From the NCBI RefSeq assembly GCF_009834535.1, contig NC_045701.1, positions 29,760,001-29,824,000 of the forward strand: a stretch of DNA of 64,000 nucleotides. Direction: 5' to 3'. This DNA is from Camelus ferus. Lineage: Eukaryota. Below, piece by piece: positions 18,190 to 47,557 of this stretch. How positions within the stretch are numbered: the stretch's first letter is position 1; every line of letters starts with the position of its first letter. The notes below the pieces were generated by a model. The model saw nothing but the letters and a program-made list of their open reading frames with translations, searched no databases and had not been told where the DNA came from. Position numbers and translations under genes: made by a program.

Positions 18190-18340
18190 GGAAAGCTCAG
18201 AGTAGCTGAGAAAAGTGAAGATGGGTACCATACAAGTAGCCTAGAGGAATGGTATAAGAATTAAATCCCACAAATAAATGCAAAGCATTTAGCATAATGC
18301 CTGGCACAGAGAAATTGCTGAATAAAATATAATAGAAGGA
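18190..18340 (+). mobile_element. MIR 3' fragment
   Basis: aatgcaaagcatttagcataatgcctggcacagagaaattgctgaataaaat matches a MIR-type tail. Confidence 0.5.
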
Positions 18341-18889: not shown

Positions 18890-19035
18890 CAGAAGAGCAT
18901 GAAGGAGTTTGAGGGCATAACAAAACTGTTCTTTATCTCTGTGGTGATCGTGGTTACATGAATCTGTACATGTGTTAAAATTCATAGAACTGTACACCAA
19001 AAGAAACCAAAACTGATTTTACTTTAAAATAATTT
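18890..19035 (+). mobile_element. L1M 3' end fragment
   Basis: aaaactgttctttatctctgtggtgatcgtggttacatgaatctgtacatgtgttaaaattcatagaactgtacacc is an old L1 3'UTR motif. Confidence 0.65.
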
Positions 19036-24083: not shown

Positions 24084-25007
24084 TCAGGCTAAGTGCTGAT
24101 AAAATAACTTTCTCACTGAAGCTTTTATTTCTTGGTTGCGTAGGGTATAAATCACAGGGTTCAATAAAGGAAAGATCACTGTATGGCAAAAAGAAACCAC
24201 CTTGTCTGCTGGTAAGGCTCTGAAGGGGCGGCTATAGATAAAGATGCCAGGCCCAAACATGAGAAATATAACGATGATATGGGTGGTGCATGTGGACATG
24301 GCCTTGCTCTTCCCCTCAGAGGAGGAACCACGTACACGGCAGAGAATGACTGCATATGAGACCAGAAGCCCCAATAAACACAGGAGAGTGAGCAGGCCAC
24401 TGTTGAAGACCATCAGGAGCTCCACCACAAAGGTGTCAGTGCAGGCCAGCTTGATGACCTGCGGCACATCACACAAGAAGTTGTCCAATAGGTTTGGACC
24501 ACAGAAGGGCAAGCGGAGGATGAGGGCCACCTGGATAATGGAGTGCACAAATCCCCCAATCCAAGGAGCCAACAGCAAGACATGGCAAGCTCTTGGGTTC
24601 ATGACGGTAGAGTAGTATAAAGGACGACAGATGGCAATGTAGCGGTCAAAGGCCATCACAACTAGGAGAAACCCTTCGCCTGCTCCAAGGAAGTGCAAGA
24701 AAAAGAGCTGAGTGATGCAACTGTTATAAGATATCACCTTCTTCTCAGAGAAGAAGTCCGCCAGCATCCTGGGAGCCACAATGAAGGAGTAGGATGCATC
24801 CAGGAAGGCCAAGTTGCCCAGAAAGAAGTAGAGAGGGGCCGTGAGGCCAGGGTCTGACCTGATGGTGAGGATGATGAAGAAATTTCCAGGGAGGATGATG
24901 AGGTAGAAAATTAGAACTAGCACAAAGACCAGGAGCTGAATACTTTGAGACTGGGTCAAACCAACAAGGATAAATTCGGTCACCACTGTATTGTTCTCAG
25001 TCTCCAT
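24084..25007 (-). CDS. OR4N2: Olfactory receptor OR4N2-like (copy 1, 307 aa)
   Basis: Intact OR frame with [19 protein letters not shown] and [12 protein letters not shown]; short C-terminus RKLFYQHLA of the OR4N2 type (human recalled as KKVFNKHIA). Confidence 0.9.
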
Positions 25008-25016
25008 CTCCTCTGC

Positions 25017-25045
25017 CTGCAGATCATAAAGAAACAGAGTTCATT
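25017..25045 (-). promoter_or_regulatory. Splice acceptor 9 nt upstream of the OR4N ATG (equivalents at 35150 and 46835)
   Basis: Minus strand ctctgtttctttatgatctgcAG|gcagaggagATG; the ctgcag|gcagaggagATG junction is identical in all three OR4N copies. Confidence 0.65.
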
Positions 25046-26189
25046 GCTGTTACTATTTCTTCCACCTAGACCCTGGATGTCCTCTAGCTAAGTGTTTGAC
25101 ACACTGATCACTTCAGCCAAAAACAACAGGTTTCCATCCTCACCAATGTCCTGGGTAAATTCTGAACATTTCCTTCATCCAGATTTAAAGCAAACAAACA
25201 AACAAACAAAAAAACACTGCGCTCAGAGCTGCACTCTTACTCCCATTCAGCCCTGTGCTTCTACAGCGCTGATATCCAACTTGGGAGGCAGCATCCTGCC
25301 CTTTCTTGGAATTCCTACCTTCTTGAATCATAGGAGAAATTTCCGAATTGAGATACAATGTAACTTCAGTTATGAAGAGCTTTGCATTTTGGTGGCTGTA
25401 CTATGCTTGAGGCTGAACAGCTGTCTTGGGATTACACGCCTTTTCTCCTCATCCACCAACCCAAATGGTTTACTGAGTATTTACTTGCTTCTGTTTCTGT
25501 AGAATTTCCAGTTCCTGCCTGCTAACTCTCTGCCTTGCTCTCTGTTTCCTTCTATCACCCTCCTCAGACCTGGTGTCCTTGTAATGCCCTGACCCAAGCT
25601 GTGCCCCAGTTTCCCAACAATAGGTCCACTTGTCACCTAACTTAGAGGTAGTCTCCTAGCTGCATCCCTGGGTAAGCACCACTCCACTGCCACCCCACGG
25701 CTTGTTCATGCAGCTTAACTAACACTATGTGAATCTCAAGTACTGATTATATACTCCCGAACTCCTTCTTTCCCTCATCCCAGTATGATGCCCAAGGGAG
25801 AGCCTTTCAACAAACAATACGTTACAATACAAAATTTGCCAGTATAAATTTTTTAATTAATTATCTTGACACATTAACATTCTTAGCATAGAAGAGGGGG
25901 AAGCAACAGTAAAGCTCCTATAGTCTAAGCCATTCCTTTTAAGAGAAGAAGCTAAAGCTACTGTGGTTACAACATTTAAGTTTGGAATGAATTTTTATTA
26001 TTGTTCTGATTGACAAGTCATAGAGGAACGCAGGTTGTACCACTCAGTTTAAACACATAAAGAAGCAACACAGTTTTCAACAATGAGCGCTCTCTTTTGT
26101 GTACTGGAATAACTAAATATAATATTGCTTGTCTAAAATCACCCCTTTACAGAGCTTAGAATTAGAATTTTAACCCTGTGCAACTAAAA

Positions 26190-26495
26190 GCACATTACTT
26201 ATTTGAAGGAAAATCTGTATGTAACGCTCAGTCTGTTTAGCGCTGCAGGCTCATTCCAGAAAGGACATGTGATGATCCCCTGAAGAGTGAAAAGACGACA
26301 GTATTAAATATTTTTACATGGGTATAATTGCCCGTGTATATGTAGTTGTCACTGCCTTTTATTTTTTTAAATGCTAGTTTTAATATGTATAATATATTAA
26401 CATGATGGCATACACACTTTATGAATAAATGAGCACAAAATTAAGGCAGAAGGTCAAAAAATATTTTGTTATGGGTATGAACAGTTTGAAAATTG
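26190..26495. mobile_element. Possible hAT-Charlie DNA transposon remnant (also at about 36325-36630)
   Basis: AT-rich with a terminus-like aaaaatattttgttatgggtatgaacagtttgaaaa; family not securely recognised. Confidence 0.3.
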
Positions 26496-28754
26496 TCAAT
26501 CTACAGAAAAATACAACATATTACCTGTAACACAGTGTATATTACGTATAACGTTTAACTTAATAGCACAATTGTGTTAAGTAAGTTCTGTGGAACATTG
26601 GATACAAAGCAGAGTGAAAACCTTTGACAGAAAAAGCTCGTGACTCACTACTCAGGAACGAAAGCTAGAAAGGGAGAAGTCTGAATGAAAATAGAAGAGG
26701 AAAGAAATAGAGAAGCAAAAGAAAAACCCAAAACAATTAAGTGCATATAGTACATTGCTATGGTACATATTATAGGAAGCAGTAAACATATCTGCTTTAA
26801 GCATCTCTAGAGCTGAGGGGAATGGCTAATACACAGGTCTCCGTGTGTGACTACTGCCAGCCCCAGACGCACTTTATCAAGTCATATTTTAACATACCAG
26901 CATGTACACGCACACAAAGACCAGACACACACACACAGGAAAGTGGGGCCTACCCAAAACTGTAATAGAAAAATATTCTGTAGGCTCTTCCATTAGCTTC
27001 TCAGCTCACTTCTTAACTTTTCTCCACTGAGGAGACATTTGTCTCAGCATTCATTCCATCATCTGCCTATAAAAATACACCAGGAAACCTAGGGGTGTAA
27101 GTGAAAAGCCCCTTCTACTTACTCTTAGCTTTTGTGCATCCCCCAAGCTCACTCAGAGTTGGTTATTGCACGATGTGCCAGTGTTTGATGGTATCTCTGA
27201 CAGCAGAGGATTTCTGAAGGTTTTCGTGATGGAAGGTTATAGGTTTTTCTACTCTGCCCACTTTCCTATCTTCCATCTCTGCTTTTCACTATTACCCAAC
27301 AGACTGGAGTCCACACTCCCTGACATAGGTGGTCCATTTACTTCCCATGACCTGTTCTGGTCTATGTACTTTCCTTACCTGTGATTCTGAAATGCTGGTG
27401 GGCATAGATCCAGAGACTGTGTATCAGATAAGCATTTCTCAGAAAAACAAATTACAACTCTGGGGAAAAACCTACCAATTATGGCCCTCTTCTGCATAAA
27501 ATATACTCTTTTAGCAAAATTTATAGGAAAAGCATTATCAGAAGAGGCTGAAGCAGAAATCTAAATTCTCACCACTACATCTCTCATCTTCCTTGCCACT
27601 GCTGCTAATTAAGAGGCACCTCTGACTCCAGCAGTGATGGCACAGTAGAGGCTGGGGAAGGCCAGGGAGACAGGCTCTCTCAACGTCGGGTGGAGACACA
27701 CACATCCTCAGACAACACTGTGCCTACAAGGACTGCAAACTGTGCTCAGACCAGCTCCTGGATTCCCGCGTTTAGAGACCCAAGGAGCTCCCTTCCCCAG
27801 CTCTTTGAAACATTTCCTCATGCTTCCTCCCTCATTTTCCCTCTTTTCTCTTCTCTCCCCTTTCATGCATCAACAAGCCTTTGATTTCCCAATTTACTTT
27901 TGTAAGTTTGATTGCAGTTTCTTTCTCCTGTTAATTTACGGCCTCTCATTTTCCCCTAATCTTCTTTCTCTTTTAATTTTGCTGTCTTTGAATCGCACTC
28001 TTCTTTATCATTTTCTCTTCTTTCTCCCTCTCATTTATTCAGGTTCCTTCACTCTGAGATGTGTTCCCTCTCTCCACTTGTCCTGAGATTCATTGCTACT
28101 CCATTATATCTCATGCTTCTCTTAGAATTATATTTAAAAAAGCACACCTCATTGTTGTTTCCTTTCAAGCAAGAATGAGCACTGTGTAGCTTCCCACCAT
28201 CTCCCATTCTAAACATTACATCCACAAAATAAAATTGTATATTTCACTGCAGTACTAAATATTCTCTCTCGAATAGAGAAAATTTTTTCAATTTACCAAA
28301 TCTGAACCACTCAATTGCTTCTCATTTCCTCATATTTCTTTTGCATGTAAGTGAACCTGATAAAACAAGTTACATTTTAAGAAAAGTAAATCTAATTAGC
28401 ATAATTCTAATAAAATGACTATAGCTAACAAGGTTTCCAACAGTTTGAGTGCAATGTCTGTCAGCGTATTGATTGAAGCTTGAAAATTCTTTAAGGGTAA
28501 ATTAACATGTTTACATATTCTGAAAAATGTAGCTCAGACTGAAACGTGATCAAATATTTAATTGGTACTGATGCAGATGACTGATTTATAAAGTCACTGC
28601 ATATATAAAGTGACTGATGTATAAATACACTGAACAAATGTCTAGATCTTCAGCAAGGAAACTCCCTCATCAATAAAGTGGAATGGTTAAATTAAATTAC
28701 CTCTAGATTTCCTGCAAATGTTGTATTTTTTACTCAGTATTAGAATTCTGCCTG

Positions 28755-28875
28755 GTTTGGAATCATTGTATCTGATTTGAATACTTTGGCTGAGCAATGC
28801 ACTAACTACATGGCCTGGGCAAATCACTTAGCTTTCAGAAGTCTGAGTTTTCATTCAAGAAATAGAATAAAGTAT
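28755..28875 (+). mobile_element. MIR fragment (also 38895-39015)
   Basis: tttgaatactttggct...actaactacatggcctgggcaaatcacttagctttcagaagtctgagttttcattc. Confidence 0.55.
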
Positions 28876-30184
28876 TGACTCTTCCTAACTGACAGGAATG
28901 ATCTGCGGATCAAATTGTGGTGATGACAGTAACACTAACTCATCAAATAAGTTCAAACCAAAGCTAATCCTGAAAATATTTAGATGGAAAAGACAGTGCT
29001 GATGATCAGACACATCATCACTAGTGCCTTTGTCAGTGTCTTTGAGTGAACCCTGGCTGATGGTAGCTGCATAAATCTGAGTGACTAGCAGAGAGAAGAA
29101 ATTGTACAGGTGAAAAAACCCTTCTTGCAAAATTCCGAATGCAGTCAGCTGTTTGTATACCAAGTTTTTCTCAGTTTCACAACTCTCTCTCTCCATCAAA
29201 GCCCTGTATTGATGAATAATGGAACCATTGGTAACAGAAGAAACTCAAATATGTTGAGTATGGAAATTAAGACATCCGGGGAATGCTCTGAAAAATCATA
29301 AAATCGGTGAAGTTTTCCTCTGGAACCTTTAGCCTTCTCTTTTTGCATCTTCCTCCCTTTCATCTGTCCTTTATAAGGAAAATAAATCATTCATTGCTTG
29401 CCCCTTGGTTTTCAACCAAATGTCAACTCTATGGAAGCTATTGCTATTTTCACTTAATAATGGTGTAGAATGAAAGTTTCTGTCCACCATTACACTCATT
29501 CTAAGCATCAAGAGCAGATGGAAATCTATTGGAGAGAGGGTAGAAAATGCCACACTGCTAAATTTAGACTTAAGCCTCTGGCTTTTCCTGTTGAATCTCT
29601 GACCTCTATTCCATTGCATTCCAAGGCAGCAGATGAACCAGCAGAATAGTTGCAACAGGGTTTCTATTGTCTTCTTGTTTCTTGTGAGTATGAATAGCCC
29701 CCAGCCCGAGAAATGCCAGTCTGCAGGTTTTATGTAACTCTCCTCCCCACCCTGGAAACACATTAACTGACCGTTTATGTCATTGTTCATTAATATTTAT
29801 TCTCACATAGGGAAGCTGAGACTTTGAAATCTCCTCCAACTCTTTATGATGCAATGGAGAAAGTGCTTTGGAGATCTGAGACTACCCGCCCCACTGAATA
29901 TTTCCAAAGGGAGTTATTAGACTGTAAACTAAATTAGGCAAGGAAACATACCAGAGCTTCGTAAAGGACAGATATTTTAGAATGTGTCAGGTAGTGTCAC
30001 ACTGTGTTAATCCTGTATTCTAACACCAAAATCCTATCAGTGAGTGAGAGAATCCAACTCTATTTGGAGTTCTGTTTCTTAGGTCAAAAGTAAATAGAAG
30101 GTTAGGAAAAGTTCATTTACATCTTACAATAAAATTGAAAATGAGAAAAAATGTAAATAAATGCTGAGATTGTTGGGAAGGAAG

Positions 30185-30520
30185 CAGGGTCAGGGTGAAG
30201 ATGAGACAAGTGAGGGTATTGCCTCAGGCATCAAATTTATAATGATAGCAAAACCTTAGCAATTAAAATTTTAAAAAATAAAGTGAAATAAATAAGATTT
30301 TTAATGCAATACTTTAAAGAGCAAAGTTAACGTAACAACTATGAACAGAATATCAATATTTAAAGCAAAGGCATCAACATTACAGATTTTCCTTTTGCCT
30401 CAGTTTTCACTATGGCTCAACCTGGCATTTTTACTAATCCTGCTTATATTTAAAATTTAGTATTTATTTGTTCATCATGAATTTTTAAAATTAATTTTGA
30501 TTTTTAAAAATACTAATTAA
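30185..30520. mobile_element. Palindromic hAT-type MITE (MER96B-like, name uncertain), right arm largely missing in unit A
   Basis: cagggtcagggtgaagatgagacaagtgagggtattgcctcagg... with an internal inverted repeat (tgaacagaatatcaatatttaaag vs atttaaaatttagtatttatttgttca). Confidence 0.55.
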
Positions 30521-30899
30521 GTCTACTGAATATTATGCTTTGTGAAATAAGACAGAGAAATACAAATACTGTATGATATCACTTCTATGTGGAATCTTAA
30601 AAATGTAATACAAAGTATACTGATGCAAAACAGAAACAGACTCATAGATACACAGAACAAACCAGTGGTTACCAAAGAGGAGAGAGAAGAGGAAAAGAGC
30701 AAATTAGCAGTATGAGGTTAAGAGATACAAACTACCATGTATAAAATACATAAGCAGCAAGGATATATGATATAGCACAGGAAATTATAGCCATTTTCCT
30801 GGATAATTTTTAATAGAGTGTAACTATAAAAATACTGAATCACTATGTTGTACACCTGAACTGATACAATACTATAAATCAACTCTACTCATTAAAAAA
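30521..30899 (+). mobile_element. L1 3' end (cetartiodactyl-type) inserted in the MITE
   Basis: aatattatgctttgtgaaataagacagag...aatactgaatcactatgttgtacacctgaa...aaatcaactctactcattaaaaaa. Confidence 0.85.
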
Positions 30900-31110
30900 G
30901 TGTAATATAAAGCATAATATTTAATTCTATTTTGCTTAGCGCTTCAGTGAGTTAAATCCTTTTCTTCTATCTAAGAGATAGAATGAGGAGCTAGTTATTC
31001 AGATTCTTTCAAAGGTTAAGTTGGGTCTTGGAGTCATCTTTAATTATATTGAATTTAGCTCAGATTGTGTTTTTTTTGAAATTTTTAACTGTGGTCTTTA
31101 TTGAACACTC

Positions 31111-31990
31111 TTTTTTTATTTAAACATTTCTTTATTGAGTTATACTCATATTGTGTCAAATTCCAGTGTAGAGCACAATTTTTCAGTTATACATGAAGAT
31201 ACATATATTCATTGTCACATTTTTTTTTTGCTGTGAGCTACGACAAGATCTTGTATATATTTCCCTGTGCTATACAGTATAATCTTTTTTATGTATTCTA
31301 CATATGCCTGTCAGTATCTACAAATTTTGATCTCCCAGTATCTCTTCCCACCCAAATCCCCCTTGGCAACCGCAAGTTTGTATTCTATGTCTATGAGTCT
31401 GTTTCTGTGTTGTATTTATGCTTTTTTTTTTTTTTACATTCCACATATGAGTGATCTCATATGGTATTTTTCTTTCTCCTTCTGGCTTACTTCACTTAGA
31501 ATGATATTCTCCAGGGACATGCATGTTGCTGCAAATGGTGTTATGTTGTCGGTTTTTATGGCTGAATTATTCCATTGTAGAAATATACCACATCTTCTTT
31601 ATCCAGTCATTTGTCGATGGACATTTAAGCTGTTTCCATGTCTTGGCTATTGTAAATAGTGCTGCTATGAACATTGGGGTGTAGGTGTCTTTCTGAAGTA
31701 GGGTTCCTTCTGGATATATGCCCAGGAATAGGATTACTAGGTCATATAGTAAGTCTATTCCTAGTCTTTTGAGGAATCTCCATGCTGTTTTCCACAGTGG
31801 CTGCACGAAACTGCATTCCCACCAGCAGTGTAGGAGGGTTCCCTTTTCTCCACAGCCTCTCCAGCATTGGTCATTTGTGGACATTTGAATGATAGCCATT
31901 CTGACTGGTGTGAGGTGATACCTCATTGTAGTTTTGATTTGCATTTCTCTGATAATTAGTCATATTGGGCATTTTTTCATGTGCCTATTG
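31111..31990 (-). mobile_element. Young 5'-truncated L1 (camelid-type) with a nearly open ORF2 C-terminus
   Basis: ORF 31567-31944 encodes [19 protein letters not shown]...HCWWEC...[21 protein letters not shown] (ORF2p cysteine-rich end), with a premature TAA; poly(T) at 31111; possible degenerate TSD attgaacactc / attgatcactt. Confidence 0.93.
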
Positions 31991-33404
31991 ATCACTTCTG
32001 TTTAACTCAGATTGATTTTATCTCCAGCTGCCACCAAGGAACTTGTGTCTTTGATCTCATCAGAGCCAGGAAGAGTTTCAGCCACAACTCTGATAGTTTT
32101 GTTTCCCTTAGGATTCGGCTATGTAGACACTCAACATCCAAGTACCTCATAACACTGAAAATGTGGGGATTCCCTCTGATTTTTTTTTCTTCCTTCATTT
32201 CCCTTTTCCTGAGCAAATTATAGGTGTCAGTGGGAAAAGGGAGAGAAATTTATAAAGCCAAGCTGTTTATTTTTGTGTTTTGAGCATTCTCATCTGTCCA
32301 CATCCCATGGGTCATTAGATCACCTCGTATTTTCTCACACCTACAAAAGATCCCATTTTATGGCAGAGTCACTCATTCATCTACAAGTATCCAGACTAGG
32401 TACCTGCCCTCAGGTACGGCGCTGCCATAGCTCTCCGCTCCTCTCTACAGGCCTTTCCCTTCTCTGGAGCTCAACCAAAAAACCTTCTTTGCTTCATCCA
32501 CTCTTTGATAGCCTCAGAAAAGTAAAATTTGAATTTTGTACTTTTCATATTGTCGATAATACAAGAGCAACGTCCTTCTGCAAGCTAACCAGAATCAGTG
32601 GTCTATATTCTGATGGTTCGCTTTTGAGAATAAAATTATTTTTGTGTTTTTAACTCTTTCCATTTTTCCCTTTGTTAATTGACTGTTGGTTTCAATTGCC
32701 CATGTTTCCTTCAGGGTATGTATCTATTTCATAGTCATTTATTAATTTTTTATGTATTAAGTGAATTAACTTCATTGTTTATATCAATTTCCTTAGTTAA
32801 TAGATTTTTTTTATTCTAATCTTTATGCATGAATGCTCCTCTGTACCATCCTGGGATAGGGAGAAAGCTCTCAATTCAATTTCCATGCAAACCTCTATAA
32901 TTATGCAGAAACTAACCTGCACATCCACATGTGGTGGGTAGATTTTCATCACTCTTCTCCTTTTAAGCCACACATTTTTTTTACGATGTCAAATATAACT
33001 ATCTTTCTTTTCATTTTCAATTTAATGTCGTACTTATTCGCCTTCTCACCTTCAAGGTCCTAAAACTATGATTCTGTATTTTACCACGGGTTTTTGCATT
33101 GCTTTGCTTTATTTTCCAAAGAAGCTGTGAACATATAAACAGGTTCTTCTAGGATCTTGGCATTTAAATTTCCAAATTCTGACTGTCAAATGTACTCATG
33201 AATCACTTGAATTTAGAAAAAAATTAATTGGCGAGAGAGGCAATAACATGAAAGGTGGTCTGTATCATTCTCCTGACTCCATACTGTGCTTAATTACTGT
33301 GCTCCTTCAGTGAGGAGCTGCCAAGTGGCTTCCTGTTATCCCAGTTTCCTCATTATTCAGGGATAGATCACTTGGTAGATTAGTTTTACAGTGTTTTTCT
33401 GGCA

Positions 33405-34213
33405 ATCATTTCTGAATGCCGAGCATAAAGAATGGTTGCCTACTGAAAACATTTTATAAGTACCGAATTTCTCACATTAAACCTCACTGTACTTAACAGT
33501 GATTTATGTGATCTCCAACAGAATCTGTAATACCAAATATCTATCATTACCATAATCAGATTGCAAACAATTGAGGGCAAGATTTAACATCCAGGGAGGA
33601 TTTGTAAAAACCATTAGTGATAATCATGAAGCTCTGAAAAAATCAAGGGAAATAACTTCATTACTTTTTTTCATAAAACCAATTAGTTTCCTTTCTTATC
33701 CACTACTAAACTTGGGGTGAGGGGAAGAAAATATATATGTTTCAGGAGTTTTCAAGCTTTTTAAATTGTTCAAACATATCATTTGGATTTAGATGATGTC
33801 TTGCCCTTATTGATCCTTGCCCAGAATCTTCATAATGTTGTTCTAAATCATACAAGAAACAATTGTGGATGAGTCAGTTCTGGCTTCAAATACTAAGATG
33901 AATTCTTTCTGCAATTAGAAAAAACAGAACTTCTTATCACAGCTTAAAACGCTTTTATTTTTTGACCTTTACAGCCACATATATTTTACACCCTAAATCT
34001 GTCACACTTATTCATTGTAACCCAATTACTCTTGTGTTTTCTTTTATGTTCCTTAAACATAGCACATTTACTCACTTCATATGTATATCTCTCCCCTAGA
34101 GGCTACGATAGTAACTGACAATGAGAAGGACTCAGTGAAAAACAATATTTGTTAAATGAATGAAAAAGTTGCAGCAGAATTGTCAGTTCTTGTCTTCTTA
34201 CTATACGATCCAT
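33405..34213. repeat. 3' flank of copy 2, paralogous to the 3' flank of copy 3 (about 45050-45898)
   Basis: Shared blocks such as ccaacagaatct, caattgagggcaag.tttaacatccagggaggatttgtaaaaacc and cttttatgttccttaaacatagca; about 85% identity by eye. Confidence 0.9.
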
Positions 34214-35140
34214 TCAGCAGATCACATGCCGACTCAATAGTCTCCTCATGGACGCTTTCACTTCCTGGTTGCGAAGGGTGTAAATCACAGGGTTCATCAA
34301 AGGAAAGATCACTGTATGGAAAAAGGAAACCACCTTGTCTGCTGGTAAGGCTCTGAAGGGGCGGGTGTAAATGAAGATGCCAGGCCCAAACATGAGAAAT
34401 ATAACGATGATATGGGTGGTGCATGTGGACATGGCCTTGCTCTTCCCCTCAGAGGAGGAACCACATACACGGCAGAGGATGACTGCATAGGAGGCCAGAA
34501 GGCCCACAAAACACAGGAGGGTCATCAGACCACTATTAAAAACCATCAGGAGCTCCACCACAAAGGTGTCAGTGCAGGCCAGCTTGATGACCTGCGGTAC
34601 GTCACAAAAGAAGTTGTCTAGTCGGTTTGGACCACAGAAGGGCAAGCGGAGGATGAGGGCCACCTGGATAATGGAGTGGACAAAGCCCCCAAACCACAGA
34701 GCCAACAGCAAGACATGGCAAGCTCTTGGGTTCATGACGGTAGAGTAGTATAAAGGACGACAGATGGCAATGTAGCGGTCAAAGGCCATCACAACTAGGA
34801 GCAACCCCTCCCCTCCTCCAAGGAAGTGCAAGAAAAAGAGCTGAGTGATGCAACCTTTATAAGATATCACCTTCTTCTCAGAGAAGAAATCCGCCAGCAT
34901 CCTGGGAGCCACAATGAAGGAGTAGGATGCATCCAGGAAGGCCAAGTTGCCCAGAAAGAAGTAGAGAGGGGCCGTGAGGCCAGGGTCTGACCTGATGGTG
35001 AGGATGATGAGGAAATTTCCAGGGAGGATGATGAGGTAGAAAATTAGAACTAGCACAAAGACCAGGAGCTGAATACTTTGAGACTGGGTCAAACCAACAA
35101 GGATAAATTCGGTCACCACTGTATTGTTCTCAGTCTCCAT
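34214..35140 (-). CDS. Olfactory receptor OR4N, chimeric OR4N2/OR4N4-like (copy 2, 308 aa)
   Basis: Intact OR frame. The N-terminus and TM6 match copy 1; the C-terminus [27 protein letters not shown] is identical to copy 3. Confidence 0.9.
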
Positions 35141-38100
35141 CTCCTCTGCCTGCAGATCATAAAGAAACAGAGTTCATTGCTGTTACTATTTCTTCCACCT
35201 AGACCCTGGATGTCCTCCAGCTAAGTGTTTAACACACTGATCACTTCAACTAAAAACAACAGGTTTCCATCCTCACCGATGTCCTGGGTAAATTCTGAAC
35301 ATTTCCTTCATCCAGATTGAAAGCAAACAAACAAACAAACAGAAAAACACTGCGCTCAGAGCTGCACTCTTACTCCCATTCAGCCCTGTGCTTCTACAGC
35401 ACTGATATCCAACTTGGGAGGCAGCATCCTGCCCTTTCTTGGGATTCCTACCTTCTTGAATCATAGGAAAAGTTTCTCAATTGAGATACAGTGTAACTCC
35501 AATTATCAGGAGCTTTGCATTTTGGTGGCTGTACTATGCTTGAGGCTGAACAGCTGTCTTGGGATTACACGCCTTTTCTCCTCATCCACCAACCCAAATG
35601 GTTCACTGAGTATTTACTTGCTACAGTTCCTGTGGAATTTCCAGTTCCTGCCTACTAACTCTCTGCCTTGCTCTCTGTTTCCTTCTATCACCCTCCTCAG
35701 ACCTGGTGTCCTTGTAATGCCCTGACCCAAGCTGTGCCCCAGTTTCCCAACAATAGGTCCACTTGTCACCTAACTTAGAGGTAGTCTCCTAGCTGCATCC
35801 CTGGGTAAGCACCACTCCACTGCCACCCCACGGCTTGTTCATGCAGCTTAACTAACACTATGTGAATCTCAAGTACTGATTATATACTCCCGAACTCCTT
35901 CTTTCCCTCATCCCAGTATGATGCCCAAGGGAGAGCCTTTCAACAAACAATACGTTACAATACAAAATTTGCCAGTATAAATTTTTTAATTAATTATCTT
36001 GACACATTAACATTCTTAGCATAGAAGAGGGGGAAGCAACAGTAAAGCTCCTATAGTCTAAGCCATTCCTTTTAAGAGAAGAAGCTAAAGCTACTGTGGT
36101 TACAACATTTAAGTTTGGAATGAATTTTTATTATTGTTCTGATTGACAAGTCATAGAGGAACGCAGGTTGTACCACTCAGTTTAAACACATAAAGAAGCA
36201 ACACAGTTTTCAACAATGAGCGCTCTCTTTTGTGTACTGGAATAACTAAATATAATATTGCTTGTCTAAAATCACCCCTTTACAGAGCTTAGAATTAGAA
36301 TTTTAACCCTGTGCAACTAAAAGCACATTACTTATTTGAAGGAAAATCTGTATGTAACGCTCAGTCTGTTTAGCGCTGTAGGCTCATTCCAGGAAGGACA
36401 TGTGATGATCCCCTGAAGAGTGAAAAGATGACAGTATTAAATATTTTTACATGGGTATAATTGCCCATGTATATGTAGTTGTCACTGCCTTTTATTTTTT
36501 TAAATGCTAGTTTTAATATGTATAATATATTAACATGATGGCATACACACTTTATGAATAAATGAGCACAAAATTAAGGCAGAAGGTCAAAAAATATTTT
36601 GTTATGGGTATGAACAGTTTGAAAATTGTCAATCTACAGAAAAATACAACATAGTGTATATTACCTGTAACACAGTGTATATTACGTATAACGTTTAACT
36701 TAATAGCACAATTGTGTTAAGTAAGTTCTGTGGAACATTGGATACAAAGCAGAGTGAAAACCTTTGACAGAAAAAGCTCGTGACTCACTACTCAGGAACG
36801 AAAGCTAGAAAGGGAGAAGTCTGAATGAAAATAGAAGAGGAAAGAAATAGAGAAGCAAAAGAAAAACCCAAAACAATTAAGTGCATATAGTACATTGCTA
36901 TGGTACATATTATAGGAAGCAGTAAACATATCTGCTTTAAGCATCTCTAGAGCTGAGGGGAATGGCTAATACACAGGTCTCCGTGTGTGACTACTGCCAG
37001 CCCCAGACGCACTTTATCAAGTCATATTTTAACATACCAGCATGTACACGCACACAAAGACCAGACACACACACACAGGAAAGTGGGGCCTACTCAAAAC
37101 TGTAAAAGAAAAATATTCTGTAGGCTCTTCCATTAGCTTCTCAGCTCACTTCTTAACTTTTCTCCACTGAGGAGACATTTGTCTCAGCATTCATTCCATC
37201 ATCTGCCTATAAAAATACACCAGGAAACCTAGGGGTGTAAGTGAAAAGCCCCTTCTACTTACTCTTAGCTTTTGTGCATCCCACAAGCTCACTCAGAGTT
37301 GGTTATTGCACGATGTGCCAGTGTTTGATGGTATCTCTGACAGCAGAGGATTTCTGAAGGTTTTCGTGATTGAAGGTTATAGGTTTTTCTACTCTGCCCA
37401 CTTTCCTATCTTCCATCTCTGCTTTTCACTATTACCCAACAGACTGGAGTCCACACTCCCTGACATAGGTGGTCCATTTACTTCCCATGACCTGTTCTGG
37501 TCTATGTACTTTCCTTACCTGTGATTCTGAAATGCTGGTGGGCATAGATCCAGAGACTGTGTATCAGATAAGCATTTCTCAGAAAAACAAATTACAACTC
37601 TGGGGGAAAACCTACCAATTATGGCCCTCTTCTGCATAAAATATACTCTTTTAGCAAAATTTATAGGAAAAGCATTATCAGAAGAGGCTGAAGCAGAAAT
37701 CTAAATTCTCACCACTACATCTCTCATCTTCCTTGCCACTGCTGCTAACTAAGAGGCACCTCTGACTCCAGCAGTGATGGCACAGTAGAGGCTGGGGAAG
37801 GCCAGGGAGACAGGCTCTCTCAACGTCGGGTGGAGACACACACATCCTCAGACAACACTGTGCCTACAAGGACTGCAAACTGTGCTCAGACCAGCTCCTG
37901 GATTCTCGCGTTTAGAGACCCAAGGAGCTCCCTTCCCCAGCTCTTTGAAACATTTCCTCATGCTTCCTCCCTCATTTTCCCTCTTTTCTCTTCTCTCCCC
38001 TTTCATGCATCAACAAGCCTTTGATTTCCCAATTTACTTTTATAAGTTTGATTGCAGTTTCTTTCTCCTGTTAATTTACGGCCTCTCATTTTCCCCTAAT

Positions 38101-41010
38101 CTTCTTTCTCTTTTAATTTTGCTGTCTTTGAATCGCACTCTTCTTCATCATTTTCTCTTCTTTCTCCCTCTCATTTATTCAGGTTCCTTCACTCTGAGAT
38201 GTGTTCCCTCTCTCCACTTGTCCTCAGATTCATTGCTACTCCATTATATCTCATGCTTCTCTTAGAATTATATTTAAAAAAGCACACCTCATTGTTGTTT
38301 CCTTTCAAGCAAGAATGAGCACTGTGTAGCTTCCCACCATCTCCCATTCTAAACATTACATCCACAAAATAAAATTGTATATTTCACTGCAGTACTAAAT
38401 ATTCTCTCTCGAATAGAGAAAATTTTTTCAATTTACCAAATCTGAACCACTCAATTGCTTCTCATTTCCTCGTATTTCTTTTGCATGTAAGTGAACCTGA
38501 TAAAACAAGTTACATTCTAAGAAAAGTAAATCTAATTAGCATAATTCTAATAAAATGACTATAGCTAACAAGGTTTCCAACAGTTTGAGTGCAATGTCTG
38601 TCAGCGTATTGATTGAAGCTTGAAAATTCTTTAAGGGTAAATTAACATGTTTACATATTCTGAAAAATGTAGCTCAGACTGAAACATGATCAAATATTTA
38701 ATTGGTACTGATGCAGATGACTGATTTATAAAGTCACTGCATATATAAAGTGACTGATGTATAAATACACTGAACAAATGTCTAGATCTTCAGCAAGGAA
38801 ACTCCCTCATCAATAAAGTGGAATGGTTAAATTAAATTACCTCTAGATTTCCTGCAAATGTTGTATTTTTTACTCAGTATTAGAATTCTGCCTGGTTTGG
38901 AATCACTGTATCTGATTTGAATACTTTGGCTGAGGAATGCACTAACTACATGGCCTGGGCAAATCACTTAGCTTTCAGAAGTCTGAGTTTTCATTCAAGA
39001 AATAGAATAAAGTATTGACTCTTCCTAACTGACAGGGATGATCTGCGGATCAAATTGTGGTGATGACAGTAACACTAACTCATCAAATAAGTTCAAACCA
39101 AAGCTAATCCTGAAAATATTTAGATGGAAAAGACAGTGCTGATGATCAGACACATCATCACTAGTGCCTTTGTCAGTGTCTTTGAGTGAACCCTGGCTGA
39201 TGGTAGCTGCATAAATCTGAGTGACTAACAGAGAGAAGAAATTGTACAGGTGAAAAAACCCTTCTTGCAAAATTCCGAATGCAGTCAGCTGTTTGTATAC
39301 CAAGTTTTTCTCAGTTTCACAACTCTCTCTCTCCATCAAAGCCCTGTATTGATGAATAATGGAACCATTGGTAACAGAAGAAACTCAAATATGTTGAGTA
39401 TGGAAATTAAGAGATCTGGGGAATGCTCTGAAAAATCATAAAATCGGTGAAGTTTTCCTCTGGAACCTTTAGCCTTCTCTTTTTGCATCTTCCTCCCTTT
39501 CATCTGTCCTTTATAAGGAAAATAAATCATTCATTGCATGCCCCTTGGTTTTCAACCAAATGTCAACTCTATGGAAGCTACTGATAATTTCACTTAATAA
39601 TGGTGATAGAATGAAAGTTTCTGTCCACCATTACACTCATTCTAAACATCAGGAGAAGACAGTAATCTATTGGATACAGGGTAGAAAATGCCACACTACT
39701 GAATTTAGACTTAAACCTCTGGTATTCCTGCTGAAGCTCTGACCTCTATTCCATTGCATTCCAAGGCAGCAGATGAACCAGCAGAATAGTTGCAACATGG
39801 TTTCTATTGTTTTCTTGTTTTTTGTAAATTGAATAGCCCCAGCCCGAGAAATGCAAGTCTGCAGGATTTATGTAACTCTTACAGTGTAGCCATCCCCCTG
39901 ACCCTGGAAACACAAAAACTGACCGTTTCTGTCATTGTACATAAAATATTTGTTCTCACATAGGGAAGCTGAGACTTTGAAATCTCCTCCAACTCTTTAT
40001 GATGCAATTGTGAAATGCTTTGGAGATTTGAGACTACCAGGACCTCACTGAATAGTTCCAAAGGGAGTTATTAGACTCTCAGCTAAATTAGGCAAAGAGA
40101 CATACCAGAGCTTCGTAAAGGACAGATACTTTAGAATGTGTCAGGTAATGCCACACTGCGTTAATCCTGAATTCTAACAGCAAAATTCTATCAGTGAGTG
40201 AGAGAATCCAACCCTATTTGGAGTCCTGTTTCTTAGGTCAAAAGTAAATAGAAGGTTAGGAAAAGTTCATTTACACCTTATGATAAAATTCAAAACGGAA
40301 AAAATGTAAATAAATGCTGAGATTGTTGGTGTACATATCAGGGAGGCAAGCAGGGTCAGGGTGAGGATGAGACAAGTGAGGGTATTGCCTCAGGCATAAA
40401 ATTTACTGTGATACCAAAACCTTAGCAAATAACATTTTAATGCAGTATTTTGAAAATCAACGTAGCAATTATGAATAGAATATCAATTTTTAAAATAAAG
40501 GCATCAACATTACAGATTTTCCTTTTGCCTCAGTTTCCAATATGGCTCCACCTGACTTTTTTACTTATCTTGCCTTTTTTTAATTTAGTATTTATTTTGT
40601 TCATTATGCATATTTTAAATTAAATTTGATTTCATAATATATTTATTAGACCTAGAGAATATTATGCTTAGTGATATAAGACAAAGACAAATACTGCATG
40701 ATATCACTTCTATGTGGAACCTTTAAAAAATAATACAAATAGCACTGTATGAAAAACAGAAAGAGACTCACAGATATACAGAATGAAGTAGTGAGGGAGG
40801 GAGGAGGGAAAGGTCAGATTAGGGGTGGGGGTTAAGAGATACAAACTACTGTGTTTACAATAGATAAGCAACAAGTATATGGGGTATAGCACTGGGAATT
40901 ATAGCTATTATCTTATAATAACTTTTAATGTTGTATAATCTGTAAAAATACTGAATCACTATGCTGTACACCTGAAACTAATAATGTAAGTGAACTATAC
41001 TTCAAAAGAA
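35141..41010. repeat. Segmental duplication unit B (5' flank of copy 2), paralogous to 25008-30899
   Basis: Same match as unit A; includes the same MIR, MITE and L1 insertions. Confidence 0.97.
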
Positions 41011-41095
41011 TTGATCAAAATACTGTTTACCACTAAGTTTTTTTGGCTCCTCCCTTAAATCTTGCCCTCAAGACAAGTTCCTTACTCATCCCTCT
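40351..41095. mobile_element. Palindromic hAT-type MITE (unit B copy) with L1 3' end inserted at about 40649-41010
   Basis: Left arm cagggtcagggtgaggatgagacaagtgagggtattgcctcagg; the right arm resumes after the L1 as ctaagtttttttggctcctcccttaaatcttgccctcaagacaagttccttactcatccctc. Confidence 0.6.
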
Positions 41096-42439
41096 GTCTT
41101 CACCATCATTTTGACCCTGAAATCAAGCAATATGCCACGTTATTAATGAGTATATAAGAATCAGCACATTTCTGGTGATGAAGGCACAGTAGAAAAACTA
41201 TAACTGATGCAAACGAAGACTTTCAAGGCATAATTCTTTTAAGAGATAGGAACTGTTTGGTATAGAATAGGCCATTTCCTCAAGGGAGAGTGACCTCCTA
41301 AACAGGATATGAAAAGAGGTATCATGATCTCAGTATTTGTTGTATATTTACTTTTACTTCACTTAGCTAAAACAAGGATGAGAAAAAATTTTGGTGTTTT
41401 TCATTGAAGATTATTAAAATAAAAATTAATTAAAGACCAGAGCAGCTAAATGCAACTTAATTTTGTTTTTTATATCTGATTCCTGGGGTTTTTTGTTGTG
41501 CTTTAAAGCGAAATCTGAGTTTATGAGTCACGTCACAATTGAAACACTAAACACACATTTTTGTAAGCAAAATACAATTTGTAATCAAATATGTACTTGT
41601 TCTAATCTACTTTCATCTCAAAGACACAGTGTGAGAAGTAGAAAAAGAGAAGAAAAAAGAGAAAAAAAAAAGATATAGAGAAGGTCAGAATTACCAAAAT
41701 ACGGAACAAGAAAACAGGGAAAGGACAGACTCATGGAGACGTAAATGGATAAATGGAAAGACAGTTATATACTGATCCACAGAAATACACATTCCACAAA
41801 TCCACAAGCCACAAAAAGAAGCCAATGCTAAAGTGACCTATGTAGAGGAAAGAGAGAAAGGAAGGGAAAATACACTAGGTTAGTTATGCACTGACATGGA
41901 GCAATAGCCCCATCTTGGAGGAGGCTAGAATTCTGCCACCAAGGACTTTTAAAATGTGATGTTTTTCCATAATTATAAACATAATCTATGTCTTTCCTCC
42001 CTTCCTTACATTCATTCCAATACAGAAGTAAAATTAATCTGAAAATCTAAGCTGGTAGTTAAAATTGAGGGCTTTTTAACCCAGCTAGGAAAGCTTTATC
42101 ATTTCAGACAGATTTGGAATTTAAAAACAAGTGAACAAAAATTTTCAAGAGTGCTCTCCTCAGGTTGACCTGAGACAATATATAGCTAATTTATTGACCA
42201 AAAAAAGCATATACACAAAAATAATTATTACAGTGAAAAGATTATTAGGCAAATAGTGAAAAGCTAAGAATATAATGCTGGCTCTAATCTATAAATGTTA
42301 TGTGGCTTTGGAAAATAACAGAGCCATTGTAAGACTGTTTCCCCCCTAGAAACGGGTATTTTTTTATTTTTTAAAATACCAATTAAGGTACTATTTATCT
42401 CTGTTACTGAATTTTTTGACACTTCCTTAGATTCCGCAT

Positions 42440-42790
42440 CCAATTCAACAAACACTTATTGTCTACCCTGAGCCTGGCAGTATTGTAAGTGTCAGCAAGG
42501 CAGTACAGACAAGACAAACATCCCTTTCCTTTAGAATTTTATATTCAAATGTGGGAATACCAACAATAAATGAGCAGGAAAGAAAACATCAGATAGTAAT
42601 GAGCCTTAGGACGAAAGTATGAGTGTGAGCTGGAGAGAGCCTGGGAAGGAGGTGGCTGTTCTAGGTGAGGTCAGGGAGGGCTTTTCTGAGGAGGTTTCAT
42701 TACACTGAGATCTGAGTGTCTAAAAGAAGCCACTCCGGAAAGAGGCCATCAAAAAGAAAGATCTGGTATGTTGAGGAACAGAAAAGAGGC
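42440..42790 (-). mobile_element. L2 3' fragment
   Basis: attcaacaaacacttattg...gtcagggagggcttttctgaggaggtttcattacactgagatctga. Confidence 0.7.
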
Positions 42791-43929
42791 CAGGGTGCCA
42801 AGAGAGTGAAAAAAATGTATACAGAAAGAAAATTCCTTCCCATCTCTTGTCCCTCATCTGTGTTCCCCATCCACAAACTTCCCCATAGCAAATAGCTATT
42901 GTTCTTTGTGTATCTTCCCGAAAGCGTTATACATGTAATAACAAAAGTCATTATATATTCCTTTGTCCTTGTTAATAAACAAATGTGATAAACATCTAAA
43001 AGTCGGGTTTATTTAAATGAATTTTAATAGCAGCATATAACTCAATACTACACAGGCATTTAAAACATCATATACACATATAGATAAATAAAATATGTGT
43101 GTATGTATAACATACATATTCATGTGTAATATAGGTTCTAGAAAAGTTTTAAAAGAAAGTTAAAAAACAGCATATATATGTCCTTATATTTAAACAAAAA
43201 TGTGCACATAGAAAAATGTGGAAAAATATATTTCTAAATGTTATATACAGTCTCTAACTTTTCTCCTATTTTATATATATATGTATATAAAATCAATTCC
43301 TTTCTACCACAAAGTCAATTGTTAAAATTATTGTTACTGACATAATCACATTAGGTAAAACCTTATATTGGCTCCTATTTTAAATTTTCAAGTTCTGCTT
43401 TCTACAATAAAAAAAATACTATATTCATTTACTTATTTACTTCATACCAGCCATTATTGAAAATCTACCAGAGCAAGTCATTGTGCTAAGAGATGAAATA
43501 CAAAAATTAAAAATACAGGGAAGGCAGAAAATTGTGAATACAGGCATAATTAATTAAAATAATAATGAGATGTTTATAAAAGACCTGTGCTTAGAGTTTG
43601 CTCATAGAGCAAAGAGGAGTGAACACCATATGGGCATTAGAAATAGTTTAAGAAGCAGGAAGCATTATGGCAGAGTCTTGGTTGAAACGTTCATCAGCAG
43701 GTGGTAAAGAGAATGTGCAAAGGGATCGAAGAATCAAACCCCATTCCTGAGCAGAAACAGTAAGAGGCAAGATTGGAATGTGGGTTATTTTTAACAGATT
43801 ATATTTGATTAAGTTTACAATTCATCAAAAGAAATTCAGGAGATACCCATGAGACTGCAGTTTTACACCATATGTAAAGGACAGATCTAGCTGACTTGAT
43901 AAAATTTACAACTTCTCAGCATATTGTTC

Positions 43930-44890
43930 TGTCTTATAGATATACCGCTAGAATTTTTCATCACTTTTCAAAAGTATACTGTTACTCTTACATTTAAAAT
44001 TCAAAACTTATTATGGCATTCAACATAGCAAGTGTTAATCTGGTAGACTTTATTCTGGGATATAAGACAAATTTCAACACATTTTTAAAACTGACTTCAT
44101 AACAAGTATGTTCTTGGACCACAATGGAATTAAACTAGAAGTGAATCAGCAAATACGTAAATATTCAGGAAAAAAAAAAACTCTAACCCATGAGTAAGAA
44201 AGTCAAAGTAGAGATCAGAAAATATTTTTAACTGCATGAAGATGAGAACACAACATATAAAAATATGCAAGATGTACAGAAAGCAGGGCTTAAGGGAAAT
44301 TTGTAGCATCAACTGATTTTTTAAAGAGTTTATAAGAAAGAGTTTAAATTAATAATTTAATCTTCCAATTTAGAAAAAAAAAATGAAATTAAACCCAAAG
44401 AAAGAAGAAATTAAATAATAGAGATAAGGGAAGAAATATATAATTTTTTAAATAGAGAAAAATAAATGAAACCAAAAGCTAATTCCTTGTAAAGAACAAT
44501 AAAATTCATAAAACTTTAGCCAGACTGGTCAGGAAAAAAAGAGAGATTACACAAATTAATAATATCAGGAATTAAAGAGGGGTAATCATTATAGACATTA
44601 CAGAAATTAAAAGAATGTCAAGGGAACATTCTGAGCAATTTCATTCCAATAAATTTGATAACTTAGATTGAATGCACAAGATTCTAAGGATATTAATTAC
44701 CAAAGCTAATTCAAGAAGAAATGGATAACGTGAATAGGTGTATATATATAGTAAAGAAATTTAATTTCTACTTTAAAATCGTCCCACAGAGAAATCTTGT
44801 GACCTAAATGGCTCCCCTGATGAAATCTGCAGACATTCAAGAAATAATCTAATTCAACACAAACTCTTTCAGAAAATAGATTATGAAAGG
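43930..44890 (+). mobile_element. Old L1M ORF2 internal fragment (endonuclease-to-RT region)
   Basis: gaccacaatggaattaaactagaagt; aacacaacatataaaaatatg; aaccaaaagctaattccttg; aaatttgataacttagattgaatg; no open frame. Confidence 0.75.
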
Positions 44891-45898
44891 GAAAAATATC
44901 TCTAAAACCCTCTGTAATTTCCTCTTGTACACAGTAAGTTGTTTAGAAGCATGTGACTTAATCTGCGCTCACATGTACTATTAATTCTCAACCAAAAAAA
45001 ATTTAAACTTCAATTTATGCTTTTGGGTTCTCCCTTTTAGATATGCCTAAATTTCTATATCTCAGTATATAGAATGGTCTCCTACTACATGAACGATTGT
45101 ATAAGTACCTAATTTCCCACTTTAAACCCCATTATGCTTAACTACAGTGATTTATGTAATTTCCAACAGAATCTATAGTACCAAATAACCATTATTATAA
45201 TCAGACTGAAATCAATTGAGGGCAAGTTTTAACATCCAGGGAGGATTTGTAAAAACCCACTAGTAAATATCATGAAGCTCTGAAAAACAATTCAGTAAAA
45301 TTATATCATGACCTTTTTTCCCTAAAACCAATTATGTTTTCTTTCTTATCAGTATAACAACTTTGAGAAGGAAAAAGAAAAAATATATACATATGTATAA
45401 AAGTACATATATACATATATTTCAAGAATTTTCAAACTTTAAAATTGTTGAAAACAGGTCTGCAGCATAACATTTGCCTTTTAATGATGTTTTGCTGCTT
45501 ACTAATCTCTGCCCAGAATCCTGATGTTCTTCTAAACCAAGGAAGAAACAATTGTGGATAAGTCAACTCTCTTGCTTAAAATATTAAGATGAATTCTTAC
45601 TGCAATTAAAATAAAGCAAAACTTCTTATCTCAGCCTAAGAGACTTTAGGAGTTTGACCCTTCAGTTGTGTATAACTTAACTCTTAAATCTCTCACACTT
45701 ACTCATTGTACTCCAGCTGCTCTGGTGTTTCTTTTATGTTCCTTAAACATAGCATGCTAATTCTCTTGTTATGTGTAACTGTCCTGTTGGCTACAGTAGT
45801 ACCTGACAGTGGGAAGGACTCAATGTAAAACAGTATTTGTTAAATGATTGAATGATTTGGAGCCAGATTTCCACTTCTTGTCTTATCATAAGATCCAT

Positions 45899-46825
45899 TC
45901 AGCAGATCACATGCCGACTCAATAGTCTCCTCATGGAGGCTTTCACTTCTTGGTTGCGAAGGGTATAAATCACAGGGTTCATCAAAGGAAAGATTACAGT
46001 GTGGAAAAAGGAAACCACTTTGTCCGCTGGTAAGGCTCTGAAGGGGCGGGTGTAGATAAAGATGGCAGGCCCAAACATGAGAAGTATAATAATGACATGG
46101 GTGGTGCATGTGGACATGGCTTTGTTCTTCCCCTCAGAGGAGGAACCATGTACATGGCAGAGGATGACTGCATAGGAAGACAAAAGCCCCAGAAAGCACA
46201 AGAGGGTGAGCAGGCCACTGTTGAAAACTATCAGGAGCTCTACCACAAAGGTGTCAGTGCAGGCCAGCTTGATGACCTGCGGCACATCACACAAGAAGTT
46301 GTCCAGTCGGTTTGGACCACAGAAGGGCAAGCGGAGGATGAGGGCCACCTGGATAATGGAGTGCACAAATCCCCCAATCCAAGGAGCCAACAGCAAGACA
46401 TGGCAAGCTCTTGGGTTCATGACGGTTGAGTAGTATAAAGGACGACAGATGGCAATGTAGCGGTCAAAGGCCATCACAACTAGGAGAAACCCTTCGCCTG
46501 CTCCAAGGAAGTGCAAGAAAAAGAGCTGAGTGATGCAACCTTTATAAGATATCACCTTCTTCTCAGAGAAGAAATCCGCCAGCATCCTGGGAGCCACAAT
46601 GAAGGAGTAGGATGCATCCAGGAAGGCCAAGTTGCCCAGAAAGAAGTAGAGAGGGGCCGTGAGGCCAGGGTCTGACCTGATGGTGAGGATGATGAGGAAA
46701 TTTCCAGGGAGGATGATGAGGTAGAAAATTAAGATCAGCACAAAGACCAGCAGCTGAATATTTTGAGACTGGGTCAGACCAAGGAGGATGAATTCTGTCA
46801 CGACTGTGCTATTTTCTGTCTCCAT
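45899..46825 (-). CDS. OR4N4: Olfactory receptor OR4N4-like (copy 3, 308 aa from METENST)
   Basis: Intact OR frame; [30 protein letters not shown] and [10 protein letters not shown] match recalled human OR4N4. The ATG at 46870 lies upstream of the conserved splice acceptor and is probably intronic. Confidence 0.88.
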
Positions 46826-47557
46826 CTCCTCTGCCTGCAGAACATCAGGGAGTAGAGAGTTTACTTCCATGTCTTTATCTAGATCATAGTTTTTCTCAAA
46901 CTAAAAGCAGTGTATTCCACATCTGTGTTACACCATCACTCTCCCACAGACTAAGAAATCTCTTCTAGCGTTTATTCTTCTCTAAGTCCTAAGTGCCAAC
47001 ACCCTGGTCTTGAAGCCACTTTCTTCTGCTTCTGACTTGTACTCCTATTTAACTGCTCTCTCGCACAGGACTCTGCCCTGCCCTGGGTTTGTTTATGATT
47101 TGCTTGAGGAATTTGAAATTTTTTCTGACTGAGAAAAAGCAAACATAGTTATCAAGTTCTTCAAGTGTTTATTTGAATAAGGGGGTGAAGTGGGAATTGA
47201 CAGTGAAAAGGAGTGATAGCTTTTTAAAGTAACAGAAACATTCCATATTTTGATTGTAATGGTTACAAGTCTTTTTTTTTCCCAAAATTTATTGAGCTAG
47301 TAAACTATAGAGAAATTGTCACATCTACTGGATGTAAATTATACCTTAAGAATGTTTCCTTAGAAAGCTTTTTTAAAAAAACCTTTGTTTTACTTGAAAT
47401 ATTTCCTTTTTCTGTATAGGATATTAACCCATCATCTTGATCTAAATAAAACGAATCCTGGTCATTGGAGAATTTGAGGTCTGAGGCTTATCTGTATAAT
47501 GGTCACCAAACTGGCAATGTGCTCAGGCAATGTACATGATTATTTATTGGTATGAAA

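Follow-up and report, generated by a model that had tools for sequence, protein, structure and literature searches.

The stretch of Camelus ferus DNA analysed here (64,000 nucleotides; assembly GCF_009834535.1, contig NC_045701.1, positions 29,760,001 to 29,824,000 of the forward strand; hereafter the window, to which all camel coordinates refer) carries, within a run of olfactory receptor (OR) genes, three intact OR4N-type open reading frames (ORFs) arranged head-to-tail on the minus strand, here called c1, c2 and c3. The middle gene, c2, very likely descends from an ancient hybrid gene produced by unequal crossing-over, that is, by non-allelic homologous recombination (NAHR); we put the probability of this reading at about 0.8. 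The exchange would have taken place within the homologous coding sequences (CDS) of two genes, an upstream one of OR4N4C type, now c3, and a downstream one of OR4N2 type, now c1. It would have duplicated the whole intergenic spacer and left between the two parents a gene with the promoter side and most of the body of OR4N2, followed by the tail and 3′ flank of OR4N4C. The event would date from before camels, pigs, hippos and ruminants last shared an ancestor. Two deletions would then have removed complementary parts of the two spacers (M and x from the first, x, W and U from the second, in the terms defined below). Recombination in the array went on afterwards: gene conversion has evened out the 5′ blocks and the coding sequences again and again, the alpaca gained a fourth copy by a new unequal crossover, the pig lost the middle gene and in the hippo copies 3 and 2 were probably fused again. 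The architecture, its occurrence in sheep and alpaca, the undivided spacer of rhino and seal, the pig scar and the conversion tracts are observed; we infer that one crossover in the CDS was the founding event, and the order in which the deletions followed.

The two spacers, the first between c3 and c2 and the second between c2 and c1, are made up of the segments defined in Table 1 (Y, M, W, U, S and R, the primed copies lying in the first spacer), and a further segment of the ancestral spacer, x, is missing from both. When the window was compared with itself by BLAST, c1 24112-30945 aligned with c2 34245-41052 over 6.8 kb, 5.9 kb of which is 5′ flank, the alignment also taking in nearly the whole CDS, and c2 33408-34213 aligned with c3 45051-45898, adding 0.8 kb of 3′ flank to the CDS match, whilst c1 and c3 aligned over coding sequence only (24112-25027 with 45930-46845). 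The middle gene therefore has the 5′ flank of its downstream parent and the 3′ flank of its upstream parent, and the parents share neither; c2 and c3 also have the same ten-residue C-terminal end, from which that of c1 differs. An earlier note on this DNA had described just this sharing of flanks and C-terminus, and in this respect its account is borne out. It had, however, put both blocks at 85-90% identity and taken their equal divergence as a sign of one event. The 5′ block shared by c1 and c2 is 94.3-94.6% identical overall and is a composite, with 99-100% identity over about 4 kb (c2 ~39620-35650, c1 ~29480-25530) and 73-92% in the distal 1.5 kb, and the 3′ block (Y/Y′) is about 80% identical without gaps and 73% with gaps. 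The argument from equal divergence is thus invalid in the camel, where the 5′ block has been repeatedly homogenised by conversion; the pattern of equally old blocks that it expected is found instead in the sheep genome, as described below. Outside S (5.9 kb) and Y (0.8 kb) the two spacer copies share nothing, and their middle parts are complementary remnants; this pattern and the unequal apparent ages in the camel call for later deletions and conversion.

Support for the proposed mechanism comes from outgroups of two orders in which the spacer is undivided, running from 3′-flank type into 5′-flank type. In the rhino (L009) an OR4N4C-type gene is followed by one continuous spacer with the order Y-M-x-W-U-S (Y 10928-11740; M to 13360; x to about 16027-16363; W and U 16363-20368; S from 20360), in which W and U are 77% identical to camel 44962-41010 and are contiguous with S. 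The elephant seal (L012) has the same order, Y-M-x and the start of W, up to the limit of the locus. Segment M is collinear with the 3′ flank of the 308-residue gene in hippo, pig, rhino, sheep and seal, and U and W are also found in the first spacer of the sheep and in the alpaca. In the camel, c2 is flanked by W-U-R′-S′ at the 5′ end and by Y-M at the 3′ end, and so is preceded by what was the right-hand part of the ancestral spacer and followed by the left-hand part, just as one would expect where a tandem duplication with its ends in the two flanking genes has been joined. We considered whether x might be an insertion specific to the rhino, in which case the two deletions would share one breakpoint, and rejected this because the seal has x as well. 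Rhino homology ends at camel 30881, and the alignments of sheep, hippo and alpaca all cross the same M-ext/R junction. A repeat-like element, R (30521-30889), stands at the distal end of S, and R′ (40649-41004) at that of S′; the rhino has no R at the U/S point, and in the second spacer the deletion junction falls on the 5′ edge of R. Other, partial copies of R occur in the window at 31236-31515 (inverted), 1603-1699 and 19791-19872. In the sampled rhino sequence (L008 and L009; JH767728.1) the OR4N4-type and OR4N2-like genes are 153 kb apart, and there are paralogous U-S units 82-86% identical to each other, which suggests an independent perissodactyl expansion.

The same spacer arrangement bears on whether any crossover in the CDS is needed, as a whole-gene tandem duplicate might instead have acquired the end of the other gene type at a later date, by a long gene conversion. 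Conversion is indeed rampant at this locus, with tracts of 4 kb at 99-100% identity in the camel, different tracts in the alpaca and a patch exchanged between c1 and c3. However, the flanks of c2 reach beyond what the supposed donors could supply: its 3′ flank (Y and M, about 3.3 kb) cannot come from the present c3 because c3 lacks M, nor can the W-U part of its 5′ flank come from c1, because c1 lacks W-U. On the evidence of these segments both flanks of c2 are original copies. In addition, conversion cannot create a duplicated, collinear spacer order, and we consider this explanation very unlikely.

Within the CDS there are 76 sites informative for the affinity of c2. All 39 sites at which c1 and c2 agree against c3 lie 5′ of c2 34310, and all 21 informative sites from 34298 to the stop codon unite c2 with c3; c2 shares roughly the last 80 nt of its CDS with c3. 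The maximum chi-square break falls at 34310/34298 (permutation p<=1e-4), which places a switch in parental affinity inside the CDS and within the zone, 34290-34345, that the earlier note had proposed. Comparison with outgroups gave a similar picture, in which c2 is of OR4N2 type up to about 34380-34399 and of OR4N4C type from 34297 onward. A strict painting with sites diagnostic of the 307- and 308-residue types could use 17 sites only, owing to conversion in the outgroups as well; the strictly diagnostic sites that differ between c1 and c2 all change type from 34297 onward. The CDS is nevertheless a mosaic and not a two-part chimera, as in a cluster of sites at c2 34815-34598 c1 and c3 agree against c2. 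The states common to camel c1, camel c3 and alpaca C are derived, the ancestral ones being kept by c2, alpaca A and B, all of the sheep copies, hippo, pig and rhino. This patch, which spans transmembrane segments 3 to 5 (TM3-TM5), is read as a gene conversion between c1 and c3, the outer and non-adjacent genes, with the middle one skipped. Furthermore, g2 of the sheep, the counterpart of c2 in the array described below, is already OR4N4C-like at 34411-34380; the boundary thus differs between camel and sheep, conversion tracts have shifted it, and the original exchange may have lain elsewhere than at today's switch, 34298-34310. The earlier proposal of a hybrid formed by crossover inside the CDS stands as regards mechanism, given that the flanks are collinear with the two halves of the rhino and seal spacer, but has to give up both the clean two-part coding sequence and the present switch as the original point of exchange.

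The age of the hybrid can be judged from other cetartiodactyls. In the bighorn sheep three genes are arranged as they are in the camel, g1-[Y′ W U S′]-g2-[Y M/R S]-g3, with C-termini of OR4N4C type in g1 and g2 and of OR4N2 type in g3, and M is absent from its first spacer, as in the camel. Hippo and pig have two OR4N genes each at this locus. The upstream gene of the pig, of OR4N4C type (L007 about 530-1459), is a frameshifted pseudogene, the 3′ flank of which (L007 1460-3936) consists of Y′, ~420 bp matching rhino 16027-16460 (the end of x with the beginning of W), the final 125 bp of Y, and then M. This order is the scar of a deletion that ran from the first spacer into the second and removed c2. 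The upstream gene of the hippo (L006 665-1591) has a c3-like 5′ flank, and its Y groups with that of sheep g2 (82/85); it is probably a re-fusion of c3 and c2 by NAHR, the reverse of the founding event. The view that the two-gene state of hippo and pig is ancestral was rejected on the strength of the sheep architecture and the pig scar. In the tree of Y sequences a Y′ clade of camel c3, pig and sheep g1 was recovered with support of 91/90, and a clade of sheep g1 and g2 was rejected (approximately unbiased test, p-AU 0.015). Tylopoda is the earliest-branching living lineage of the Cetartiodactyla; as sheep and camel have the same array, the three-gene array with both deletions predates the crown of that group. 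The hybrid is accordingly more than 60 million years old, from before crown Cetartiodactyla, and is not an event of the camel lineage.

An origin that is recent or specific to the camel does not survive the bighorn sheep, an outgroup with three OR4N genes and the same sharing of flanks, which is the very result that the earlier note had said would count against its account. A single unequal crossover confined to the camel or camelid lineage, with the two-gene state as ancestral and both blocks of the same moderate age, would account for the two genes of hippo and pig and for the S-block trees, which unite camelid S and S′ to the exclusion of hippo, pig and rhino. It would leave the three genes and identical junctions of the sheep unexplained, and the first-spacer junction and W remnant kept by the pig mark the two-gene state there as secondary. 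Moreover, Y and Y′ have diverged as much as camel-hippo orthologues and the two blocks are unequal (94% vs about 80%), such that this origin is highly improbable.

Several considerations weigh against the ancient crossover and its dating. Two extra deletions are required after the crossover, and the mosaic CDS no longer reveals where the crossover first took place. Support in the Y tree is moderate, and a clade of camel c2 and c3 is disfavoured without being formally rejected (p-AU 0.057-0.067). In the S-block trees S and S′ pair up within the camelids (100/100) and within the sheep (96/96, whole block) and not by position; taken alone they would date the duplication after each lineage had split. 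The rhino and seal loci cover the spacer and the gene before it, so the hybrid may also be older than the Cetartiodactyla. As the paralogues cluster within lineages, S-block phylogeny failed as a dating tool. We attribute this clustering to concerted evolution, visible as kilobase tracts of 99-100% identity, and infer older homogenisations of the same kind. Independent duplications were not accepted, because two lineages would each have had to undergo the same two deletions at identical junctions, and the pig scar would be left unexplained. In the sheep, where homogenisation is weaker or older, S/S′ and Y/Y′ are 71-89% and about 68-86% identical per 100-column window and the two blocks are similarly diverged.

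The alpaca locus (39 kb; GCA_048564905.1, CM108725.1, 30310517-30349768, with the c3 orthologue just beyond this DNA) shows the locus in motion. Its gene A is the orthologue of c2, with the 10 kb upstream of A matching the camel up to 45178, and its gene C is the orthologue of c1; between them is an extra intact gene, B. In windowed identities taken from a MAFFT --auto alignment, the 5′ side of B is mostly 98-100% like C and the 3′ side 98-100% like A, and the duplication takes in the entire 9.2-kb unit, at about 97% identity. B is a young, textbook product of unequal crossing-over between A and C and thus a fourth copy, in which the mechanism proposed for c2 is directly seen at work at this locus. 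This bears in turn on a further possibility, namely that one replication-based rearrangement with serial template switching, of the fork stalling and template switching or microhomology-mediated break-induced replication (FoSTeS/MMBIR) type, made the hybrid and both spacer ‘deletions’ together. Three switches in one event would need no separate deletions and would suit spacers that keep complementary parts (M vs W-U); the middle switch, however, lies in about 900 bp of homologous CDS, the classic substrate for homologous recombination, and alpaca B shows plain unequal crossing-over at work here, with the spacer duplicated at full length. We regard such a rearrangement as unlikely, and prefer an NAHR crossover followed by deletions.

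The same alignment reveals the reach of gene conversion. Over c2 37880-36150, camel c1 and c2 are 99-100% identical, against 79-88% for alpaca A and C, as expected of a conversion tract; since the alpaca genes still differ to this extent, the homogenisation of that stretch is specific to the camel lineage. In a neighbouring tract the situation is reversed between camel and alpaca, and different stretches of the 5′ block have been homogenised independently in the two. The idea of two unrelated events (94% vs about 80%), with c1 a recent derivative of c2, was dropped, as the alpaca windows show recent tracts on an old baseline of ~83%. Synonymous divergence (dS) among the camel copies (0.15-0.24) is below that between camel and sheep orthologues (0.32-0.37), which likewise indicates gene conversion. 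The ratio of nonsynonymous to synonymous divergence (dN/dS) is 0.12-0.24 over all copies, all of which are intact, being 0.15-0.17 for c1 against its orthologues and 0.12-0.15 for c2 against alpaca A and sheep g2; all of the OR4N copies are thus constrained.

The identity of the three genes and the soundness of the assembly are not in serious doubt. Each of the three is a single-exon ORF and matched Pfam 7tm_4 (PF13853) at 148-149 bits, against a cut-off of 27 (E = 3e-43 for c1), as do class II olfactory receptors. Their named database matches, at 85-99% identity in many mammals, are OR4N2, OR4N4(C) and OR4N5, which places them in the OR4N subfamily, although these names are automatic and are not tests of function; the top match of the OR4N copies is a Camelus dromedarius protein at 99% identity. 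The orthologues of c1 are alpaca C, sheep g3 and the 307-residue genes of hippo, pig and rhino, its 3′ flank being orthologous too, and the 5′ flank of c3 is orthologous to those of the 308-type genes of hippo, pig, rhino, sheep (g1) and seal. The c3 ORF has 15 extra codons upstream of the conserved start (46826-46870), and a ten-residue stretch of the upstream peptide is also readable in the pig pseudogene; this stretch, including the splice-acceptor region, is therefore conserved. Tandem OR arrays are prone to mis-assembly, and a collapsed or mis-joined repeat might mimic a hybrid; yet two Camelus dromedarius assemblies, independent of each other, are collinear with 45141-24216 at 99.2-99.4%, order and spacing included, the architecture recurs in alpaca and sheep, and there are no runs of N within 24-47 kb, which makes the chance of an artefact negligible.

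The closest known parallel is among human ORs, where OR8U8/OR8U9 gave rise to the chimeric OR8U1 by NAHR (Hasin et al., 2008; PMC2570968). As is proposed for c2, two tandem ORs in the same orientation recombined inside the CDS and an intact chimeric OR resulted. However, OR8U1 is a deletion product, two genes having been fused to one, and is recent and polymorphic in humans, whereas c2 would be a duplication product, fixed and dating back at least to crown Cetartiodactyla. It is the upstream gene of the hippo that may truly correspond to the OR8U1 deletion product. The textbook duplication products of unequal crossing-over are anti-Lepore haemoglobin and the red/green opsin hybrid genes. Like c2 they take their 5′ flank and the 5′ part of the gene body from the downstream parent and their 3′ end and flank from the upstream one, with a duplicated spacer; unlike c2, an anciently fixed chemosensory gene under purifying selection, they are human variants and often pathological.

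Unequal crossing-over together with gene conversion is the standard model for the evolution of OR clusters. The OR4N locus does not differ in kind from mammalian OR clusters at large, having the same tandem gain, loss by deletion or pseudogenisation (as in the pig) and interlocus gene conversion; what sets it apart is an unusually complete reconstruction of a founding hybrid, its reversal, a deletion scar and a recurrence. Mammalian OR clusters have been described as evolving by birth and death (Niimura and Nei, 2007, as cited in PMC3814877), and the general view of their evolution is unchanged by our results, which provide an ordinary example that would not surprise a specialist. A literature search found no paper on this OR4N hybrid. 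The value of the locus is rather as a case study: a clean, datable chimeric OR from unequal crossing-over, which purifying selection has maintained intact in no fewer than three lineages (camel, alpaca and sheep). In related lineages the same locus records the opposite reaction in the hippo, the scar of a deletion in the pig and a repeat of the event in the alpaca. It also serves as a warning that the identity of paralogous flanks within a genome is a poor clock in OR arrays, conversion having made a duplication more than 60 million years old look 94-99% identical over kilobases.

It is conceivable, though improbable, that the complementary retention of spacer segments, with M kept only downstream of c2 and W-U only upstream, reflects partitioned cis-regulatory elements for OR choice or expression. 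Were this the case, each duplicated spacer could lose only what its twin had kept, and the hybrid would have been preserved for more than 60 million years as the sole holder of full copies of both ancestral flanks.

Table 1. Positions of the OR4N genes, spacer segments and conversion tracts in the camel window.
Feature	Position	Strand	Remarks
c1 (copy 1)	24084-25007	-	Intact OR4N2-type gene, 307 aa; C-terminus ...RKLFYQHLA, OR4N2-type
S+R, 5′ flank of c1	25008-30889	-	Paralogous to 5′ flank of c2; 94.3% by self-BLAST
c1 side of recent ~4-kb conversion tract	25530-29481	-	99-100% identical to c2 35650-39622
M-ext and M-ext/R deletion junction (about 30881-30889)	30881-31066	-	x-W-U of ancestral spacer missing here
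Repeat insertion	31067-32000		Spacers of hippo, rhino and seal lack it
M	32001-33407	-	Ancestral sequence downstream of OR4N4C-type gene; kept in c2-c1 spacer only
Y, 3′ flank of c2	33408-34213	-	Paralogous to Y′ of c3
c2 (copy 2)	34214-35140	-	Intact gene, 308 aa, probable hybrid; c1-like from start codon to 34310, OR4N4C/c3-like from 34298 to stop
S′+R′, 5′ flank of c2	35141-41004	-	Paralogous to c1 flank
U+W	41010-44962	-	Distal part of ancestral OR4N2 5′ flank; kept in c3-c2 spacer only
Y′, 3′ flank of c3	45051-45898	-	M and x missing beyond; Y′/W junction 44962-45051
c3 (copy 3)	45899-46825	-	Intact OR4N4C-type gene, 308 aa counted from conserved start; ORF extends to 46870
TM3-TM5 patch of c3	46283-46500	-	Derived states otherwise only in camelid c1/C; c1 partner 24465-24682

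Elsewhere in the window, and outside the array discussed above, there is a fourth OR gene, OR4M-like and 319 residues long, at 55765-56724; the only runs of N in the window, 55867-56009 and 56059-56201 (143 bases each), lie inside it. An inverted pair of OR4K/Q-like sequences, 73% identical to each other, is found at 6501-7301 (plus strand) and 14481-15620 (minus strand), of which the former has an ORF without the N-terminal part and is perhaps a truncated pseudogene.

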